Part shown: positions 3,065 to 23,820 of the stretch, piece by piece | Position numbering within the stretch: the first letter of the stretch is position 1 | Layout of the letters: every line of letters starts with the position of its first letter | The notes under the pieces: model-generated | Databases searched by the model: none | The model's input: only the letters and a program-made list of their open reading frames with translations | Told to the model about the DNA's origin: nothing | Program-made: the position numbers and the translations under genes | Assembly (NCBI GenBank): GCA_020137815.1 | Contig: CM035351.1 | Coordinates: 2,480,001-2,544,000 of the forward strand | DNA: 64,000 nucleotides | Direction: 5' to 3' | DNA from: Hormiphora californensis | Lineage: Eukaryota > Animalia > Ctenophora

Positions 3065-5788
3065 ATGGTCAAGAAGATTGCCAGTGTTACGCTCCAGCAG
3101 CTCCTCTATGAGTGGGACCATGTGAGTTGAAAGAAGTCAACTAGACTCAATTAGACATGCAGACAGCTAATGTAACAGAGGGTGGGATAAATCAAAAAGA
3201 AGGACTGACAAACCGACGGACAGAGAAACAGATAGATCATAAAAATAAACATAAAATGGAAGAGTTCTTCCATACTTACATAGAATCCTTTTCCTTTCAG
3301 GGTAAAACGAAAGCACGGGAGAGGATTTTGTCCAACTTTATAGCGAACCATATCAATGTCAGTGGACCAGACCTTGAAGAGGAATTCGCAGATGCAGCAT
3401 CTCTCTTTCTTACACGCATCACTACCTGGCTTCGACTCACGTAATATTGATACTGCTGCATTGTTTGTTTGTTTGTGTGTGTGAGTTTGTTTTTCGGTGT
3501 GGGGATACGTGCAGTGAACACACGTGTGGGCGGGGGACAATAGGAATATGTGGAGGACAGCCTACAGTTATATTGGAGAGGGAGGGAGAGAGTAGGGAAG
3601 TTAAGAAAGAAGGGGAGGTGTAAACCTTTGTTCAGATTTATAATTAGAGGTATTCATTTGACACGTTTTCCTTCATATTATACAGGTACCTGCTAGGAGG
3701 AAACATCAATATCCAGTTGGATTCTGTCAAGATTTTCCTCTCGGCTTCCTGTGGGTGAGTGTCCAAGAGGATCAATATTACCAATTCTCACGCTCTACAG
3801 TCTACCGTTATTGTTTGTTGGGTGTATTCGTTTGACTGTCGAGTTCCTCTCTGGGAACTTCACTCAGTTCACAGCTTTAGTTGATGCGTGGTGGTGGACG
3901 ACCCCCTAGCAACACTGCTGCGAAACAGTAACGCGCAGAGTCCTGGTTGTGTGAAAAGTAAAGTGCTCGCGCGCAATGACACTGGACGTCTTTGCAATAT
4001 GAATATCACTTTCTGAATCTGATCGTCATCTCACCATTTCAGAGAGCTATTGTTTGTAATTTGTTTAAGTTTCGGACTTCGGTTTCAGTTGGAGCCCCCT
4101 AGGGTCGAGAATTAGCCCTACCTCTAAATCCCCCACCCTTTCCAGGCAGAGGTATCTATCGGAATTTCTTGAAGTTGGCGGTATCCTCACTCTCCTAGAA
4201 ATCCTTGGACTCAAATCGGCTCGGGAGATTGACAAATGTTCCTGCTCTCCAGCTCCTTGAAACGATCTCCAAATGTGGGAGAAAGTACAAGGAGGTGATA
4301 TGTGAGAGCTATGGTGTGAGGGCTGCGGCAGAGTGTATGGCACGTTCATTCTCTGCCGACACCCAACAAAATGGGTTGTCGCTCCTTCACTCTCTGGCCC
4401 AGGGCAACCCTCGGTATCAGAAACAAATTCACCAGGTTCTCAAGGATCTTCTACCCAGCACTAACCCTGGTAAGATTGTAGATATACGCCGGGTAAGATA
4501 TTTGGGATTTTAGGAGCAGTTTTACAGGGTGAACCTAAACAGTCTTAATATAACCTAAACAGTCTTAATATAACATTGGTAACTAAGGTTTAACACTCGA
4601 GACCAAATCTGATAATCTATTTGATTCTTTTACAGTTTACTACCCCTTATCCAGGCACCCAAAAGGTTGCAGCCCAAGGACTACGGCAGATCCAGAAACT
4701 AGTTGGTTCACCTACCCCCTCACTTGTTGAGAATGTGCTGGCTCTACTGAGGAGTGTTCACTCGGATGTCCAATATGAAGCATCCCAATTGTTACAGGTT
4801 AGGAGTGGGTGGGTCATTTTTGAGCTGGTTTGTATTTCATAGTGGGGTGAGGTCTTTCAAAACGAGGTCTGGTGTCGCCAGACAGGGTTGTCCCACTGCC
4901 TTGTGGAATAATCAATAAATCCCATTCTACTCAAGTAACATATTCCCATAACGATTTGCAATTGTAATACCCTATCCCATCTCCCAGATATTGTAAATAT
5001 CAAATCCCCCAGATGTAGTAACTAACATGTACCCCCCCCCCCAGATGTTGGTAGACTATGAAGATGTAAGGGAGGTGGTGGTGTGTGGTCTAATCGCCCT
5101 CCTGACCCCCACCCTAGATGATGTATCCCGTGCTACTGATGCACCTCTCGCTCAGCACCTTCAACAGGTATATCAGCTGTCTAATATAGCAAAATATATC
5201 TTACGACATAACATATCCCCGACATAAATTTTGTTAGTTAGATGTGACTAAAACTGCTGCTCTAGTGCTCTATATTTTTAAGAACAAAGTTTCATTTAGT
5301 TGATTACTACCTCGATCCTCTCCTCTAGGCAGCAGCAGCTAAACTGCTAGGTATTCTCTGTGACGATTCCCCCAAACTGGCTGCCCTGGCAGTGAGGAAT
5401 GGAGTGGTAGCTGGGTTAGCGGTGGTGCTGAGCAATGCTCGGCATAGAAACAGCCAGCAACACGCAGCCCGGACCCTGGCATTGTTAGTTGAGATGTTTA
5501 AGGAGGTGGAGAAGACGCTCTGTGAGTCTCTGGGACAGGAAATACTGGACGAGTTCAGAAGGTACGTGGTTTTTACTTCTCAGAAAGTGAAACCGCAAGT
5601 GAAAATTTTGGAATAATGCTTGAATTGCAACCACCATATAATATAAGTGAGTGAATAAGAACAATACACATGTTTCCTGAAGGTGCCCAGAGGATATTCA
5701 CGAGAAGTTGAGTCCCTCCCAGCTTGATAAACTGATTGCACGGAACACCCAGATAACCCTTGTGGACAGTGATGAGAGTGATGAATGA
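3065..5788 (+). CDS. ARMH1: Armadillo-like helical domain-containing protein 1 (C1orf228), 8 exons: 3065-3121, 3301-3440, 3686-3754, 4146-4469, 4655-4797, 5045-5167, 5329-5561, 5683-5788; apparent +1 frameshift near 4240
   Basis: Spliced translation gives EWD..KARERILSNFI, ASLFLTRITTWLRLTY, YLSEFLEVGGILTLLEILGL, GRKYKEVICESYGVR, GNPRYQKQ, VQYEA and LQQAAAAK, matching ARMH1 motifs. All introns are GT-AG. Confidence 0.9.
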
Positions 5789-9366: not shown

Positions 9367-11168
9367 AATGATTGATTGATGACGAACGTATGACGTATAG
9401 GTTTATATACTATTCACTCTACTCTTGCTCTTAATGAATGCATTCCTATCATTTTCTTGTTTAGTGTACTACTCTTGCTCTTAGTGAATGCATTCCTATC
9501 ATTTTCTTGTTTAGTGTGTATTGACAGGGTACGATGTACTGTCCAATCAGAGCTATTGATTAACTGATTGGGTCATCCGAATCGATATGAAAATACGCTT
9601 AGCTCTAGCTTCTATGGGTCATTGTCAATGAAACGGGGTCAGATTTCTGATTGGAGAAAAACACTATGATCAGTGTGATTGGTATGCCACACCTTGGAGT
9701 AGGTCACCAGGCTGGTAGGTAATTGCGACTTTTGGTCGCCGTGACCTACTGGTCCCCTAATTAGGGTTTACAGGAGTAGGTCACCAGGCTAGTAGGTCAC
9801 CAGGGGAGGCACCGTCTATTCGACGAAATATCATCTAGGGGAGCTTCAAGCTGGTTAACAGCTCTGCCTTTGAAAGAGCACGGTTTCGTCCTCAACAAAC
9901 AGCAATACCGGGACGCCATCTTGCTGCGATACAACCTTCCCCTCGAAGATGTGCCTATTGCATGTGCATGTGGCAAGGCGAACACTCTCGAGCACTGTCT
10001 CTCGTGTGCCCTCGGAGGATACGTGTATTTAAGGCACAACAATATCCGTGACCTTACAGCTAACATCCTCGTGGAAGCCGGCTGCAAAGATGTCCGCATT
10101 GAGCCGCAGCTCCTACCCATAACTGGTGAAACATTCCAATACCGTTCTACTAACACTGCTAACAGTGCCCGTTTGGATGTTTCTGCCCGTAATGTGTGGA
10201 GTGACTTGGACAAAGTTTACACTGACATCCGTGTATTCAACAGTCTTGCGCCAACCAACATCGGCAAGTCCCTCCAGGACACTATGAGGAGACACGAGAG
10301 GGAAAAGGTATTGAATTACAACGACAGAGTCCTTCAGGTCGAGAAGGCAACTTTCACACCCCTAGTCTTCTCAACAACTGGGGTTATGGGCCCCCAAGCG
10401 GAGGTGTTCTACAAGAAGGTTGCTAAACTTCTATCTGACAAAACGGGACACACCTACAACGATGCCATCCGGTACATTCGTCTCCGTCTGTCTTTCTCGC
10501 TGCTGAAGACCATTCTCATCGCGATCAGGGGGTACAGGGGCAACAAATGGACACACTTTTGTAGCAAAACAAACGATTTTCATCTTATTATCTGATTTAT
10601 TTATACTTAACTTATTACACCCATAAGAGTAAATTTTATTTTTATACCTATTCATGTAAATAATATTGTACTGACATATATTCTATTTGAACCGGTACCC
10701 CGGCCTTCACAAAAAAATAAAATTTAAAATAAAAAAGTCTGGAGATTTTTGAACCATTTTTTAAATTTTTTTCACGCATCTTTAAAAATTGGACCCGTAT
10801 GACGACTGGGCACTGGTGTGTTTACTGTGTAGTATTGAAATGAATCCCAGATGATATATCAATAAGTTCAAAAAACTGTCAATCATGAATCACAGTTGAT
10901 CCCAAATCCCCTGAAATTTTTCCAAAATTTCGTCTCATAATATCCTATCATTGATAGGGATTAGGGGTCCATAATTGGGTCCCTTATAAAATCGTTACTT
11001 TACTTCTTCTTACTTTGCACTGTAGTCTTGTGCAGAGGATTAATAGTGACCACCATGTGCGAATGCGACGTGCATACCACAAACTTTTTGCTCTTTTTTT
11101 CAAAGCACAAATCACAGCCCATATTTGTTTCTAGCCGGCAAGTTACCCCTGCCCCCGTTGTTGGTGGA

Positions 11169-14100
11169 ATGGCCGAGTGGAGTGAGGATGATAACTTAGC
11201 ATCGACATCCACCGACAACCAACTCAACTCTAATGCACCTATCAACTGGTATGTGTGTAGGGAGCAGGGTAGAATGAAATGTAACAGCTTTACAGTACCA
11301 GCTTATAATATTTCATTGCCTTGCTCGACCCTCTCTCGCCTAATTGTAAAAGAGGGATAGAACTCAAGTATTTGATATTCAAATCTCTCAGGGACCCGTT
11401 TGATCTGGACTCAGGAAGCCAAATGTAAGTCCCTCTCTCAAATTACCCAATTGAATATTCCAGCAGGTCGGAAGAATCTCGACACCGAAATATATATGTA
11501 TTTCATATCTCTTGAAAACCTTTTTACACTGATTTTTCTAGAACTCTACCCTGCTATTACAGATTCAACCAAAACATGTTTTGCAGGTCAACGTACAGTG
11601 ATCCGTTTAGTATCAGTACACTGAAGACTGAGTTGGGTGAGCTACAGGAGGGAGGGAAACATCTAACTGAGGATAATCCCTCTGAAAGGTGTGTGTAGTC
11701 ATTAATCACGATTAGAGTTGTATTTCTCAAACATTTAACATTAACAGAAATCTTCAGTTTTGACCCCCCCCCCTACCCCTCTCTCCAGTTTTATTACCTG
11801 AAACACAACCTCTGATTGGTAACATTATCTTTTTTCAGGTTTTCATTTAACGTCTCGGCGACTCCTTCAATGCTAAGTAAAGAGAATGGAAGCATTGTGA
11901 CGTATTTCAACAAGGGACAGACGTACGAGATATCTCTTCAGTGTAAAACACCCTCCCACTATAAGGGATGTCATATTGAGGTGAGGATAATTGGTGTTTC
12001 TGACATGTTTCTACATTTTACACGACACACAGTATACTATAACACACATAAATCTATATCATATTCTAAAGTTACTAGTTAATATAACATATTGTATTGG
12101 CTAATTAAGTGCTAACATTTGTTTCTCAGTGTAACGTGTTACTGCGCCTCCAAGAGAAGAAGTTACAAGCTAAGGAGCAGATCATGTTCGATCAGTGGTA
12201 CAGTGAGAGCAACACCAGGCTCCTTGAAGCAGGTAATAGTGAGAGCAACACCAGGCTCCTTCAAGCAGGTAATAGTGAGAGCAACACCAGGCTCCTTGAA
12301 GCAGGTAATAGTGAGAGCAACACCAGGCTCCTTGAAGCAGGTAATAGTGAGAGCAACACCAGGCTCCTTGAAGCAGGTAATAGTGAGAGCAACACCAGAC
12401 TCCTTGAAGCAGGTAACAGTGAGAGCAACACCAGACTCCTTGAAGCAGGTAATAGTGAGAGCAACACCAGACTCCTTGAAGCAGGTAATAGTGAGAGCAA
12501 CACCAGGCTCCTTGAAGCAGGTAACAGTGAGAGCAACACCAGGCTCCTTGAAGCAGGTAACAGTGAGAGCAACACCAGACTCCTTGAAGCAGGTAATAGT
12601 GAGAGCAACACCAGACTCCTTGAAGCAGGTAATAGTGAGAGCAACACCAGACTCCTTGAAGCAGGTAATAGTGAGAGCAACACCAGACTCCTTGAAGCAG
12701 GTAATAGTGAGAGCAACACCAGGCTCCTTGAAGCAGGTAATAGTGAGAGCAACACCAGACTCCTTGAAGCAGGTAATAGTGAGAGCAACACCAGACTCCT
12801 TGAAGCAGGTAATAGTGAGAGCAACACCAGGCTCCTTGAAGCAGGTAATAGTTAGAGCAACACCAGACTCCTTGAAGCAGGTAACACTCTGAACAGTGAA
12901 GTGTGAACACTGTTTAATTTGCTTGCGAATACTATGTCTGGAAGATGACCCCGGACCCGCCCGAATGTGAGACAGCCGCACGCAACAAGGCCACCCACCA
13001 ATCGATTTAGTATAGGTTCTTGGATAACTAACATGTCTCTTATTCTCCCTCAGATTGTCAGTCGTGTGTAAACACAGAATCAATAATAAACGACACCCTG
13101 AATCCTAACAGTGTTCATGTAGTATGGGATCCCAATAAAACCTGTACATTCTTTGTCAAGGTAAATCATTTTCCAGAAATCCTCTAACAGATTGGTCCTT
13201 TATTGATATTTTTAGTGATACCCACTTCATAATCATTAGGATATAATATTTAATAAGTCTCTAACACCCCCCCCCTCCCCCAGGTTCACTGTCTCAGTGG
13301 TGACTTCACAAAGAGAAAACACAGCGGAGAGAAAGGGGTCCCGTTCCTGTTTTGCGTTGATACATATCTTCACATGGCGGACAAGGCCAGTAAATACATG
13401 TGTACTTCAGCGTGTGTGTTAAAAATATTCCAGGTAATGCGAGTTCTAGGAATTATGTAGGGATTCGATTCTTGGTTTATGTAGGGATTCGATTCTTGGT
13501 TTTTCTAGAATTTATTTGGGGTGTATCAGATAGGTTTCCGTTATATTATTGTCAGTTTGTGTGTCCGTAATTGGCAGAGTGTGAGTGTACCGGTACATGT
13601 ATTATTATCACGCGGCCTTTCAGAGCAAAGGGGCAGAAAGGAAACACAGAAATGACGCGAAACAAATCCAAAAGCTCTCACAACAAGAAAAGGTACCTAC
13701 ATAATCATTATATTTTATTTCTGGCTAGAATCCAAATATTTACTCTCTAAATCAAGGCACCCTCCATCACAAATATTATGTGGTATTTGAGTGATTTAAT
13801 TAACTGAATTCCTTTATCAGGACCAGCTAATACGACCATCAGAAGTTACCAATCTTAAACCTGTAAGTAACAATAACGATCGATATTTCTTGCTCTGAGC
13901 TCTCTCTTTCCCCCTCTCTCTCTCTCTCTCTCTCTCTTTCCCTCTTTCTCTCTCTAATACAACTTAGTACACATTCCCTCCCTTTATATATTAACTCCTC
14001 CTCCCTCAGATAGTAAGGACGTTCAACAAGCCAGGGTGTAGCTACAGTGACGCCTACAACAGCTCCGGATATTGTGCGGACAACTCCAAACTTTCAGACT

Positions 14101-14834
14101 GGTACGCGCCCCGACAGACAACATGGGGTTGTGGCGCGAGATAGCGCGCATAATGGGGGCGCGCAACTCTCTCAAAGCAACAAAACCTGTTTCACGTGCC
14201 TGACAAGGACACAAAAAAATTACAAACCTGAACCACAAACAAACAATATTGGCATGTGATTCTAACGGTTTGTTTATGTTTCAGTTACTCCGATCCGGAC
14301 AATGAGGTGTCATCCCCCAAGAAACCATGTATTGGAGAATCTCGAGATGTGTGGAGTCTCACATCTCGCTCCTCTGTCCACGATACCCTACGATGGTTGA
14401 GGACAAACCGGTTCAATACCTATCTTTCAACATTCAACGAATACGCAGGCTCAGATCTCCTGCGGCTATCTCGGAATGATTTGAAGGATCTCATAGGAGT
14501 GACGGACGGAATCCGACTCCATAACGCCCTACAAAACAGAGTGCTGGCAAGCAGTATCTGCTTGTATGTGTTGTTCGAGGGGAATTGTACCCCTTCAAAT
14601 GTCTACCAAGCGATATACCTGGAGACACTTACATATCGTGAACTAATGAGCAAACTATGTAGCACATTCAATATTGACCCAAATACTATTGTTGGAATTC
14701 AGAAGAGTGGGCCGAGTGGAATTAACATTGCAGTGACAGATGATGTAGTCCGACACTTGGCGAACGATGCATGCTTTGTTTTTACCCTTTTGAATACTGA
14801 CCGAGCTGAATTGTCTATAATTCATCTTAAATAA
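11169..14834 (+). CDS. TFCP2: LSF/TFCP2 (CP2-family) transcription factor, 10 exons: 11169-11248, 11587-11688, 11839-11980, 12130-12232, 13054-13160, 13284-13433, 13624-13692, 13821-13862, 14010-14101, 14285-14834
   Basis: TYFNKGQTYEI, WDPNK, VHCLSGDFTKRKHSGEKGVPF and KGAERK of the CP2 domain, plus a SAM domain (WLRTNRF...GSDLLRLSRNDL...DGIRLHNAL) and GPSGI..VTDDVV tail typical of LSF rather than Grainyhead. Exon phases are consistent. Confidence 0.9.
12202..12885 (+). repeat. 19 x 36-bp tandem repeat agtgagagcaacaccagRctccttgaagcag|gtaaY spanning the exon 4 donor
   Basis: 684 bp = 19 x 36; near-identical units encoding SESNTRLLEAGN. Confidence 0.97.
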
Positions 14835-16254: not shown

Positions 16255-19200
16255 CTAATTGATACCTGATTTGGAGACATCTAGATCAGTGTATACATTA
16301 GCTGGATCGATGGATGTCAATGACTTCCTCGCTACAGCTGTGGCTACCTCCATGTCAACCAAAGCTGGTCCTATCGGGGTTTGTTGTTGCTCATGCGGCG
16401 ACTAGGGTAAAGAGTTAGTTAGGTGATATTATCTCTGTCAATATATTATCTAGAATATCATGTGACATCAGATTTCTTGTTATGTTCTAACCCTCCTTTA
16501 CATATTTTGTAAAGAGCGGAGCTCGCGAAAAGGGGGTCGAGCTAGGCAACAGATTTCATTGTTGGTCGCCCCCATATCTCACAGGGACGGGACATTGATG
16601 GGTTACCGAGTATGAAGGTTGCCTGGTGTGCTCCACACTTTGCAAAAACGTCTGGTGATGCTGGAAGGTGGGGGACTTTGTGGAAGGGGGCGGTGGAACG
16701 ATTTGGCGGTGTTTCTTCGGAATCTCCAGTTGCTCCAGGAGTTGTTCGCTAAAATAGGTATCAATCAATATTCTCAGTATCTTTGAAGGACCTCACAGGG
16801 AGACCCTAGATCCTAGAATCAATTTTATACCGGGAAATCTTAATATTTAAAACAGGGAGAAGGGGTATTATTATAATAGGGATATAGGAGAGGGAGACAT
16901 GGAGGCGCTTCCACGTGACATTGATAGTTTTAACCTGTTATACATGGGGGCAGCATGATCAGCAAGACACATGGGGACTGGGAGGGAGACAGCTAATTTG
17001 GATTGGCTTCCTCAACTGCCCTGACTTCGCAATAATGCCCCTGAAAATGAGGGACATATATTCTACGAAAGATGCTACAACTTGAATTGTCAAGCGACGT
17101 ATTATATGGGCAGCATTCGAAACTATTATTAGTTATTGCGTAAGGGGTTCGGATAAACCGACAACTAAATATCACTATTTAGTGATATAAACAGTTAAAA
17201 TATCGTCATTATTGTCACCTCAAGTAAGATCTTCATACTCCCTAGACCCGTGATCAGCTCTATCAGTCTCTTCCTTTCTGTCAGCACTAAACATGTAAGC
17301 AACATGAGCCCGGTACACAAAAGTACCACGTGTATACGTACTGTGAGATATAACTCTGACTTCCCCCAGTATAACGTCTCCTGGAGGGTGCTGGGGCAGA
17401 GACCCGGGATCTAACGACATGCGATCCTGATGCTACCGCGGCAGTGGGCCCGGGAGAAACGGGATCAGATACCGATGGACGTTCTGTAAATTACAGTGTC
17501 ATGATAGATTCATTCACTATTTTGACACATATTTGTAATGGACAATGGTAGATTCAGTCACACATATTACAACATAAAACTGCTGTATCTTCTAAACTCA
17601 CGTTGTGCTAGGATGTGGGTTAGTCCAGATCTCCTAGCTCGGCTGTTGCCACTGTTCAGCTCCAAGGGACCTGGATCACTCTGCCTCTTCTTCTTGTGAA
17701 CAGAGATGAGGTGTTTTCGAAGGGAGGACGGGTCTGTATACACCTTGTTACAGTTTGCTACAGTACAGTTGTACCTGCAGGTGTGTTACGTTTAGTTTTA
17801 TCTGCAGGTTCTATACAGGCATTGAAACATTTAACAGCAGTGGTCTAGTTTGTAACCGACCCTTCTTCAAGTATCCTGGTTAAAGAAGGGTATAGACTAT
17901 AGGGTGTAAACTAGACAGCAGGAAGTGGTTGGTGTAAGGGGGGCCCTGATGGGTCACATCAATTGTTTGCCGCCACAGCAGGGTTCACTGCATGGTAACG
18001 GCATGGCCGCAATTGTACAATTTCGGGGTTTTTGAAGTGTGTGTGCGTGACTGTGAGTTCAACAGTATCACAAGGTATAGGGGGGTGTGGTAGTGTGGGT
18101 TAGTGCCAAGTGGTGGAGTGATTGGCTAACAAGTTCACGATTGTTGCTGGCGATGATCACTACTGATGATATATATATTGATAAAGCGACGTTTTGCTGA
18201 ACAAAAAACCTAGCTTGCTCACATTTTCTTCCTAATGTGAGTTCTGTTTCTGTGTTTTGCTCTGTCTGACGGATTGTTGAAGCCCCTGCCGCACTCTGGA
18301 CATATGTAAGGCTTCTCTCCTGAAAGAAAAACCGCCCACAATTACCGAAGGTTGGTGTGTTAATTGAGATGTGAACTATTTTTTTTCGGGGTTAGTCTAT
18401 TTTTAGAAACAGATGTCATTCTGTTTGTACCTGTGTGTGTTCGGATGTGTGCTTTTAGATTTTCCATCCGTGAATAGGATTTGTCACAATCGGCATACTG
18501 AAGGAGAGAAAAGTAAAATAGAAAAATGTCTATAAACACTTCTTTAAGGCACCTAGGGTACGATTTGAAGCTGCATACTAGTAGCATGCAGCTTAAAATT
18601 CTCGTACCCTGTTTTATAAAGAATAAAGATGGTCTGATATGAGCTTGGGCAAGTCAATTTATATACCATTATAGAGAATGGTTAACTTACAGGACAAATG
18701 TGAGGTCTCTCCCCGGTATGACTCCGTACATGTGTAACAATCTGGTACTGAGCCGAGAAGGGTTTGTGGGCTCTGGAACACCCTGCCCAGAAGCACACGT
18801 ACTCGTTCTTATTTACCCATGCATCACTCTGGTAGAGAGGCAAAAGGGTATAAAGGGGGAAGGGCTGTGAGGGGGTTTTGTTATGGCATAATCATCTCCC
18901 ACCCCTCCGCTTCGGGGTAATAAGTGACAATTCAGATTTCTTGAGTAATTAGTTACTCAACAAATTCAGAACATGATAGTAGCCTGATATGTGTGTGGCC
19001 TTGTATCTTTGACATTTAAAAAAGAATCCCCTCTGATCCTTGATTCTCTATCTATGGGACATGGGTGTATTAGGAAAGGAGATAACTTGAACTTATTAAT
19101 TGAAATGCATGTCCCCTTTGTGTGTGGCCTGGTAACGAACGATAATATCTTTGACATTTCACTTAATGAATTCAAGTTATTTCTTTTCCTAATATGCACC

Positions 19201-22389: not shown

Positions 22390-23820
22390 ATCACTGCGCT
22401 GGCAAGCGCAAAGGTGACCCCATCCATCCCCCGAAAAAAAATTCCCCCAAAAACGGCCCGCTTGCTCACAGCGTATATATAGTTATTTCATACTTTTAGC
22501 CCATTTTGGCACTTTTTGACATGCCATAACTCCCGAACCGGAAGAGCTAGGAAGCTGAAATTTTGTACTTAGAAGCTTCTTGTAGACCTCTATCGATGGT
22601 AAAAATTTCAAGTGGCTAGCTCTTTTTGTTCAAAAGTTATAACACCACCCCCAAAACAGAAAATTCAGTGTGGGGATAACTAGGTTGATACATCACTGCG
22701 CTGGCAAGCGCAAAGGTGACCCCATCCATCCCCCGAAAAAAATTTCCCCCAAATACGGCCCGCTTGCTCACAGCGTATATATAGTTATTTCATACTTTCA
22801 GCCCATTTTGGCACTTTTTGACATGTCATAACTCCCGAACCGGAAGAGCTAGGAAGCTGAAATTTTGTACTTAGAAGCTTCTTGTAGACCTCTATCGATG
22901 GTAAAAATTTCAAGTGGCTAGCTCTTTTTGTTCAAAAGTTATAACACCACCCCCAAAACAGAAAATTCAGTGTGGGGATAACTAGGTTGATACATAGATA
23001 GATAGATAGATAGATGTATAGACGCTTTGTTACCTTCCGTTTGGTCCCAGTTTGAGACGACCAGACTGTACGCCTTAAACCAAGCGGCTTCGACAGATAA
23101 TGTCCGTGCATGTACCCCATCTGGGTGGCGACTCTCCATCTCTACCTATGATCGCGCGCAATGACGTCAGAGTGACGTCATTGCGTGAGACCGACTAACT
23201 TTTTTCAAACGCCTCTAGCACCCTGAAGACGTGTTTCCGATTTCTGATTTGACGAAAAATCGTTACCGGCAAATTGTCTGAACTTTCAGATACTATATAG
23301 CGATTTTCGTAGCTTATCATTTTGAGCCCTTAAATCGCGTCGGAAGTCGAAATTTGACGAAAAACTCAAATTGAATTTTTTTCGAGTAAAAACTCCCTTT
23401 CCTGACCACTGTGGTCAATGAAACTTACAAGCTTCTTTGGGTATTGATTCAAAAATATATGTGATGCAATTACGTCGTTATGACGTCACTAATTACGTCA
23501 AATGACGTTCTTTATGACGTCTAAAACGATTTTCGACAATATATACATCATTAAATAATGTCTGCTGCTGCGATTAGAAACCAAAAAGGGACTACAAATT
23601 AAGCCAAAAAACTAATTGAAATTAGTTGGCGGGAAAGGTGACCCACTTACAACTTTGCCTGCCTGGCCGGGATCGGATGGAATAAGACAGTAAACTGTTT
23701 AGGAGTTGGAGTAGTGAGAGATTAGAGAGAGGAGAAGATAGCCTTGTGCTGAGAGATAGACCGTAAGGATGGAGGAGAGTGCGCAGAGAGAGCGAGCGAG
23801 AAGAGAGCAGCTAGAGAGAG

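Follow-up and report, generated by a model that had tools for sequence, protein, structure and literature searches.

A CP2-type gene and the repeat at one of its exon borders

The window, by which we mean the whole 64,000-nucleotide stretch analyzed here (C2:2480001-2544000 in the 110,691,255-base, 45-contig genome assembly of Hormiphora californensis), carries on its forward strand a gene with a CP2-type DNA-binding domain. The exons of this gene were searched singly, not as a joined spliced sequence, and the RNA evidence on them comes from assembled contigs of three runs (seawater and transcriptome), which reach a depth of 2-7x on this gene. The mapped exons are the following, where a slash between two positions marks a splice joint.

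11839..11980, + strand: coding exon at the start of the CP2 domain, exon 3 of the preliminary description (Pfam CP2, E 1.2e-7; RNA joint 11980/12130, GT..AG)
12130..12232, + strand: array exon, 103 nt, with a phase-1 end, exon 4 of that description (RNA contig X7 record 18 covers 12128-12232; 28 of 33 residues as in Bolinopsis UBP1-like 128-160)
13054..13160, + strand: next coding exon, exon 5 of that description (RNA joint 13160/13284; 23 of 33 residues as in Bolinopsis 164-196)
13284..13433, + strand: coding exon, best-conserved stretch of the CP2 domain (spliced RNA at both ends; 40 of 50 residues as in Bolinopsis; Pfam CP2 match in the genome-wide search)
13624..13692, + strand: coding exon (RNA joint 13433/13624; tblastn)
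14010..14101, + strand: coding exon (RNA joint 14101/14285; tblastn)
14285..14834, + strand: last coding exon, with SAM_3 and a GRHL1-like C-terminal domain, followed by the stop codon (Pfam SAM_3 2.1e-15, GRHL1_C 6.3e-17; RNA contigs from three runs)

Contigs from the seawater and transcriptome runs confirm four introns bounded by GT..AG (11980/12130, 13160/13284, 13433/13624, and 14101/14285), and an RNA contig extends 5' of exon 11839-11980 into the previous exon, with a loose end at 11837. The CP2 DNA-binding domain (PF04516) exceeds its cut-off in two exons, 11839-11980 and 13284-13433, and both marks of the CP2 branch, a SAM-like domain and a C-terminal dimerization region, are present in the last exon. 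The closest named protein is the "upstream-binding protein 1-like" of Bolinopsis microptera, to which the last exon is identical at 126 of 180 residues (~70%). Across all 110,691,255 bases in 45 contigs, the Bolinopsis protein matches one place only, the locus in the window; the genome-wide Pfam CP2 search returned a second, more distant CP2-domain match on C3. Judged by its sequence, the gene belongs to the CP2/LSF subfamily of the Grainyhead/CP2 factors (TFCP2, UBP1, TFCP2L1), and it is the sole CP2/LSF-type gene in the genome. A preliminary description of the locus, made from the letters of the DNA, had spoken of a TFCP2-type DNA-binding domain, which is right at the level of the family (Pfam CP2, SAM_3, GRHL1_C). 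It had also named the array exon as exon 4; the border of that exon agrees with the RNA contig, and the number should be taken as nominal because the first exon is uncertain.

The end of exon 12130-12232, together with the first bases of the intron that follows, is repeated in tandem. The parts of this array and of the remaining intron are listed here, with a slash marking the exon–intron border.

12202..12885, + strand: minisatellite, 36 nt x 19, each unit joining 31 nt from the exon end to the first 5 bases of the intron, GTAAY (TRF, unit listing)
12233..12238, + strand: donor 1, CAG/GTAATA, with GT at 12233-12234 (match of the spliced RNA contig stops at 12232; ortholog junction RLLEA/V)
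12269..12886, + strand: 18 pseudo-donors, GT at 12269 + 36n, CAG/GTAAYA, equal in strength to donor 1 (consensus scoring)
12853..12855, + strand: in-frame TAG of unit 19, from G>T (unit listing and frame count)
12886..13053, + strand: rest of the intron, unique in sequence, whose strong acceptor has 16 pyrimidines in 20 and then CAG (sequence reading)

TRF reports the repeat at 12202-12884, with a period of 36, 19.0 copies, 97% matches, zero indels, and a score of 1268, and the window holds 19 tandem copies of the 36-nt unit at 12202-12885. Unit 1 (12202-12237) consists of the final 31 nt of the coding exon and the intron bases GTAAT. In a unit-by-unit listing, four columns vary among the 19 units, namely positions 4, 18, 25, and 36. 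Position 18 is G or A, which gives AGG or AGA and thus Arg either way, and position 36 is T or C, which gives AAT or AAC and Asn either way; these two common variants occur in all four combinations, in an irregular, non-periodic order along the array. The other two changes are each found in one unit: unit 2 alone has G>C at position 25 (E>Q), and unit 19 alone has G>T at position 4, producing the in-frame TAG. All 19 donors read CAG/GTAAYA, a match to the consensus at 7 of 9 positions, as at the other donors of the gene, and all 19 keep the frame with the acceptor before 13054. When lengths and stops are counted, donors 1-18 would add 0-204 aa without a stop, and donor 19 takes in the stop. 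The repetition of the exon end with its donor, the phase-1 donors compatible with the acceptor (exon 12130-12232 ends in phase 1), and the 18 stop-free copies before the TAG of copy 19 had all been claimed in the preliminary description, and TRF, the frame count, and the unit listing bear them out. The intron is now 821 nt long; its last GTAAC and unique remainder together come to 173 nt, and the other introns of the gene measure 123-190 nt.

Several unrelated features of the same stretch may be recorded here. A 241-aa open frame at 9870-10595 (+), ~1 kb upstream of the mapped exons of the CP2 gene, resembles part of a mobile element. Short open frames with C2H2 zinc-finger motifs of the GLI/GLIS/ZIC type at 17567-18843 (-) look like exons of a zinc-finger gene convergent on the CP2 gene, and two tandem copies of a 302-nt unit, 98% identical, lie at 22390-22995. 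Pfam matches of the read-through ORF to DUF302, Ank_KRIT1, and MgtE_N were rejected as repeat-driven: either no stretch passed alone, or the score lay far below the cut-off.

Local origin of the array and its presence in an independent sample

A genome-wide search with the unit gave 19 matches, all of them inside the array, against 0 for the control pattern. A dispersed repeat is ruled out by this result, as the unit occurs nowhere else in the 110.7-Mb genome. Because the unit is unique to the array, it was made locally, from the exon–intron junction, and the tandem-duplication origin that had been proposed beforehand holds as well. Unit 1 is immediately preceded by GGTAC, and GGTAAY closes every unit. 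Slippage between two such near-identical short repeats, the GGTAC ahead of the unit and the GGTAAC at its end, is the probable source of the first duplication. Unequal exchange would then have grown the array to 19 copies, stretching the intron from ~173 nt, its likely length before amplification, to 821 nt. The four variant combinations and their irregular order are readily understood in these terms, because repeated unequal exchange yields such patterns and assembly error does not.

An alternative is that the array is an artefact of assembly, with one or two units present at the true locus. Assemblies can mis-size tandem repeats, and contig data give no copy number. The published H. californensis assembly (110 Mb, 44 scaffolds, 13 chromosomes) was, however, built from 247x PacBio reads averaging 2.7 kb (PMC8527503), which, if it is the assembly analyzed here, far exceeds the 684-nt array, and the non-periodic order of the four unit types is unlike a collapse or expansion error. 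Moreover, in a DNA sample from an independent study (X5), some contigs cross from the flank into the array, others lie inside it and connect unit to unit, and the summed word depth of the array is ~3200-3400 against 110-470 in the flanks, a many-fold excess that is not itself a copy number. An assembly artefact thus seems to us extremely unlikely.

The X5 sample also differs from the window. One of its contigs has 2 extra bases at a unit border, giving a 38-nt unit that would break the frame. Its introns before 12130 and after 13160 are unlike those of the window for 155 and 185 letters (from 12125 and 13166), and its exons match. By its sequence, X5 may represent either a haplotype or population with very high divergence in the introns or else a close sister form, in each case one that still carries the array.

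Use of the donors and its possible consequences

One RNA contig reaches the end of the array exon. This contig (X7 record 18; 147 nt, depth 7.3, from a seawater sample) is spliced at 11980/12130 and matches the window up to precisely 12232, beyond which there are 4 unalignable letters. These letters were left unplaced by the aligner and are therefore not GTAA, the next letters of the genome; the array of this wild sample may have a copy number of its own. Among the few low-depth contigs of the three RNA runs, none lies within units 2-19 or anywhere in 12285-12986, and in the same three low-depth runs, none bridges the array exon to the next exon with at least 31 letters on each side. The RNA fits splicing at donor 1, on the thin evidence of a single low-depth contig, and with coverage this thin, minor use of nearby pseudo-donors is possible. 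Another contig of the same set, X7 record 19, joins 30 antisense letters of the upstream exon (11941-11970, -) to 13076-13158 (+), which begins 22 nt past the exon start at 13054, and then splices normally to the next exon; it is probably chimeric.

The preliminary description had suggested that each CAG/GT could serve as an acceptor–donor in recursive splicing. This suggestion finds no support: the 20 positions upstream of the CAG of each unit contain only 10-11 pyrimidines, versus 12-17 at the six real acceptors of the gene, and so poor a pyrimidine tract makes recursive splicing unlikely. Of the two features of a recursive (ratchet) site, the AG/GT is present and the strong pyrimidine tract is absent. 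Recursive splicing has been described in very long introns, and the 821-nt intron here is far shorter. Masking of the pseudo-donors by RNA structure was also considered and is ruled out, as a pre-mRNA segment made up of the exon and three units shows no more stable folding than its shuffled versions (z 0.51).

Related ctenophores have a single unit at this border. In the Bolinopsis UBP1-like protein (P0156), one copy of the unit is followed directly by the sequence of the next exon, and the same holds for P0002 and P0152, which are transcript-derived and come from another ctenophore. All four read-through ORFs from genomic contigs of relatives (P0158-P0161) lack the repeat after the RLLEA exon end, and the ortholog exon ends at the same residue as the array exon (RLLEA/V). 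A search for the spliced protein of H. californensis itself, with regions 60-260 and 290-473 of P0002 as queries, retrieved only P0002 and the Bolinopsis protein, and the exon plus three units retrieved only the genomic read-through ORFs of the relatives. Among public metagenome contigs, the conserved exon 13284-13433 found one genomic contig of a relative, which ends 71 nt upstream of the exon and thus short of the junction. In an AlphaFold model of the Bolinopsis ortholog (mean pLDDT 79.6, ~96 around the junction), the junction falls where a short beta-strand (residues 158-160) ends, within the folded core that binds DNA, and inserts of 12-204 residues are accordingly predicted to fall within a confidently modeled part of that core.

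We consider it likely that the array belongs to the "mirage" type of splice-junction minisatellite, with a 36-nt junction segment duplicated in tandem, and that its first donor is used and the array persists as a tolerated by-product, not as a device. The array has the structural features of this class of repeats. The spliceosome would pair the acceptor of the exon with the first donor it meets; with the first donor in use, the protein is the normal, single-unit form, and splicing takes out units 2-19 with the rest of the intron. This is the most likely outcome. As the pseudo-donors equal the real one in strength, the nearest of them could be used occasionally. The array itself would be a tolerated product of the very frequent tandem duplication seen in this genome. 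Against this explanation stand the thin RNA support, a single contig with 4 letters past the junction and none bridging to the next exon, and the short introns of the gene, which could favor the last donors. The 36-nt unit is also in frame, 18 copies are free of stops, and both widespread variants are synonymous, which is weakly suggestive of coding constraint, although two of four variant sites is not significant.

The preliminary description proposed that several of the 18 in-frame donors are used, so that a ladder of isoforms with 0-17 inserts of 12 aa arises in the DNA-binding domain and copy number or donor choice tunes the factor. In its favor, the donors are identical at the nine consensus positions and are in phase, 18 units lack a stop, the common variants are synonymous, and the human genes IFI6 and CBS likewise use their two nearest pseudo-donors (PMC1557585). 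A unit length divisible by three, however, has a one-in-three chance of occurring, and the exonic part is stop-free by origin. RNA contigs are absent from unit 2 on, with the one covering contig diverging from the genome at donor 1; the orthologs have a single unit; X5 contains a unit of 38 nt that breaks the frame; and the inserts would enter at a beta-strand of a confidently folded core. We found no support for the ladder, nor any for tuning of the transcription factor by copy number, and to both ideas we assign a low probability. A further variant, which we judge very unlikely, is that pseudo-donors are used at a low level or in particular tissues, giving variable 12-aa inserts by the core strand; a hypervariable copy number would then amount to heritable variation in activity or dose, and, more broadly, the many junction arrays of the genome would continually feed the extension of exons and the lengthening of introns.

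Because the introns of this gene are short (123-190 nt elsewhere), pairing across the intron could favor the last donors, restoring an intron of 173 nt and yielding either a 204-aa insert (donor 18) or a degraded, stop-containing mRNA (donor 19), such that the array would lower or cripple expression. The spliced RNA contig nevertheless departs at donor 1 without reading into unit 2, the gene is the only CP2-type locus in the genome and has all its other exons intact and expressed, and the human minisatellite cases use the upstream donor (PMC1557585); we regard this outcome as very unlikely. It is also very unlikely that the array acts as a regulatory decoy, where an intronic row of U1-binding sites would affect splicing efficiency or protect against early termination and copy number would set expression, with the protein unchanged. 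Nineteen equal U1-type sites in 684 nt invite this inference, but the array is absent in relatives, and arrays of unrelated sequence are equally common in the genome, the strong-donor motif not being enriched in them (2 arrays of 18 against 1.3 expected).

Known junction repeats and the other minisatellites of the genome

The term "mirage" was introduced for amphioxus tandem repeats that span an exon–intron boundary, which are found in Adh3, troponin C, the globins BflGb6 and BflGb9, and PGBD5 and are reported not to disturb normal splicing (PMC3087553, PMC3902484). As in the CP2 array, a splice site is reiterated and the unit is locally derived; the mirages are unstable in length (PMC3087553, PMC3902484). 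The CP2 array differs in that its host is a ctenophore and not a cephalochordate, and in that its unit is 36 nt long, in frame, present in 19 copies, and located in the DNA-binding domain of a transcription factor.

Several human genes provide closer parallels for the choice among donors. Intron 7 of F7 (IVS7) contains a 37-bp VNTR of 5-9 copies, in which the pseudo-donors are all functional and the most upstream donor alone is used (PMC1557585). There, too, the first unit crosses the exon–intron boundary and identical donors stand in a row (PMC1557585), although the F7 unit has 4 exon and 33 intron bases, in contrast to the 31 exon and 5 intron bases of the CP2 unit, and donor choice in F7 was tested by mutagenesis, whereas in the CP2 array it is read from sequence and contigs. 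In LMNB2 and a PDGF gene, the real donor alone is used (PMC1557585). IFI6 (6-16), with 25 pseudo-donors, and intron 13 of CBS, with 15-20 repeats, behave differently, using the real donor and the two nearest pseudo-donors and thereby producing a short ladder of isoforms (PMC1557585). These two share with the CP2 array a real donor followed by many pseudo-donors; use of the pseudo-donors is documented in them, whereas none is seen in the CP2 array, at low RNA depth. The IFI6 and CBS cases make minor use of donors 2-3 a realistic possibility here. If the first donor alone is used, the CP2 array would be one more natural case, with 19 equal donors competing for one acceptor. Found in an early-branching animal whose introns are short, it could then reveal whether the "first donor wins" rule of human F7 also applies outside vertebrates.

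The amphioxus globin paper cites intron gain by tandem AGGT duplication (Rogers' model) in connection with mirages (PMC3087553). The likeness to the CP2 array is that a tandem duplication containing AG/GT makes extra splice signals. The difference is that no new intron has arisen; an existing one has been lengthened by copies of its own donor, and the array illustrates an almost five-fold growth of an intron through duplication of its border. The CP2 array gives no sign of a new splicing or regulatory system; its repeat type is known from amphioxus and several human genes. A literature search for splice-junction minisatellites in ctenophores found nothing specific.

A sample of 264 kb (200 kb at round coordinates plus the window) contains 18 minisatellites not of low complexity, a density of ~one per 15 kb. 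Of the 18, 2 have a strong donor motif, versus 1.3 expected from shuffles, and an acceptor-like motif in 6, versus 4.6 expected; in this small sample of 18 arrays, motif enrichment gives no sign of a process targeted to junctions. Frequent tandem duplication in a compact, intron-rich genome would suffice to produce junction arrays of this kind. Two more are found in one intron of an EF-hand gene, within C2:6312001-6318000 (L022).

L022:3419-3692: donor-type array, 34 nt x 8, exon end plus CAG/GTAAG
L022:3869-4433: acceptor-type array, 35 nt x 16, pyrimidine tract plus CAG plus the first 7 exon bases

On C3 (4630001-4640000, L023), a 30-nt x 3.7 array with CCAG/GTATGT lies at L023:9644-9754, ~2.2 kb downstream of the second CP2-domain match, and may be another exon-end-plus-donor array, in a Grainyhead-like gene. 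A 19-nt unit (GCAGGTTAAGGAGGA...) forms arrays on both C1 and C4 (L001:9123-9732; L011:3912-4139 and 4331-4456). It has a donor-like CAG/GTTAAG and, rather than being derived locally, represents a dispersed satellite family.

A metagenome contig of a related ctenophore (L025) has its own, unrelated minisatellites at 1-71, 300-420, and ~640-760, in the introns flanking the conserved exon. That these introns carry unrelated arrays indicates that repeat-rich introns are common to the relatives and that the arrays themselves are not. The H. californensis genome is unusually rich in minisatellites, and some in the sample are very large: 33 nt x 130 at L008:3114-7403, 32 nt x 50 at L006:6448-8058, 10 nt x 200 at L003:1589-3568, and a 34/102-nt array that extends over 3.2 kb at L001:3777-7006.
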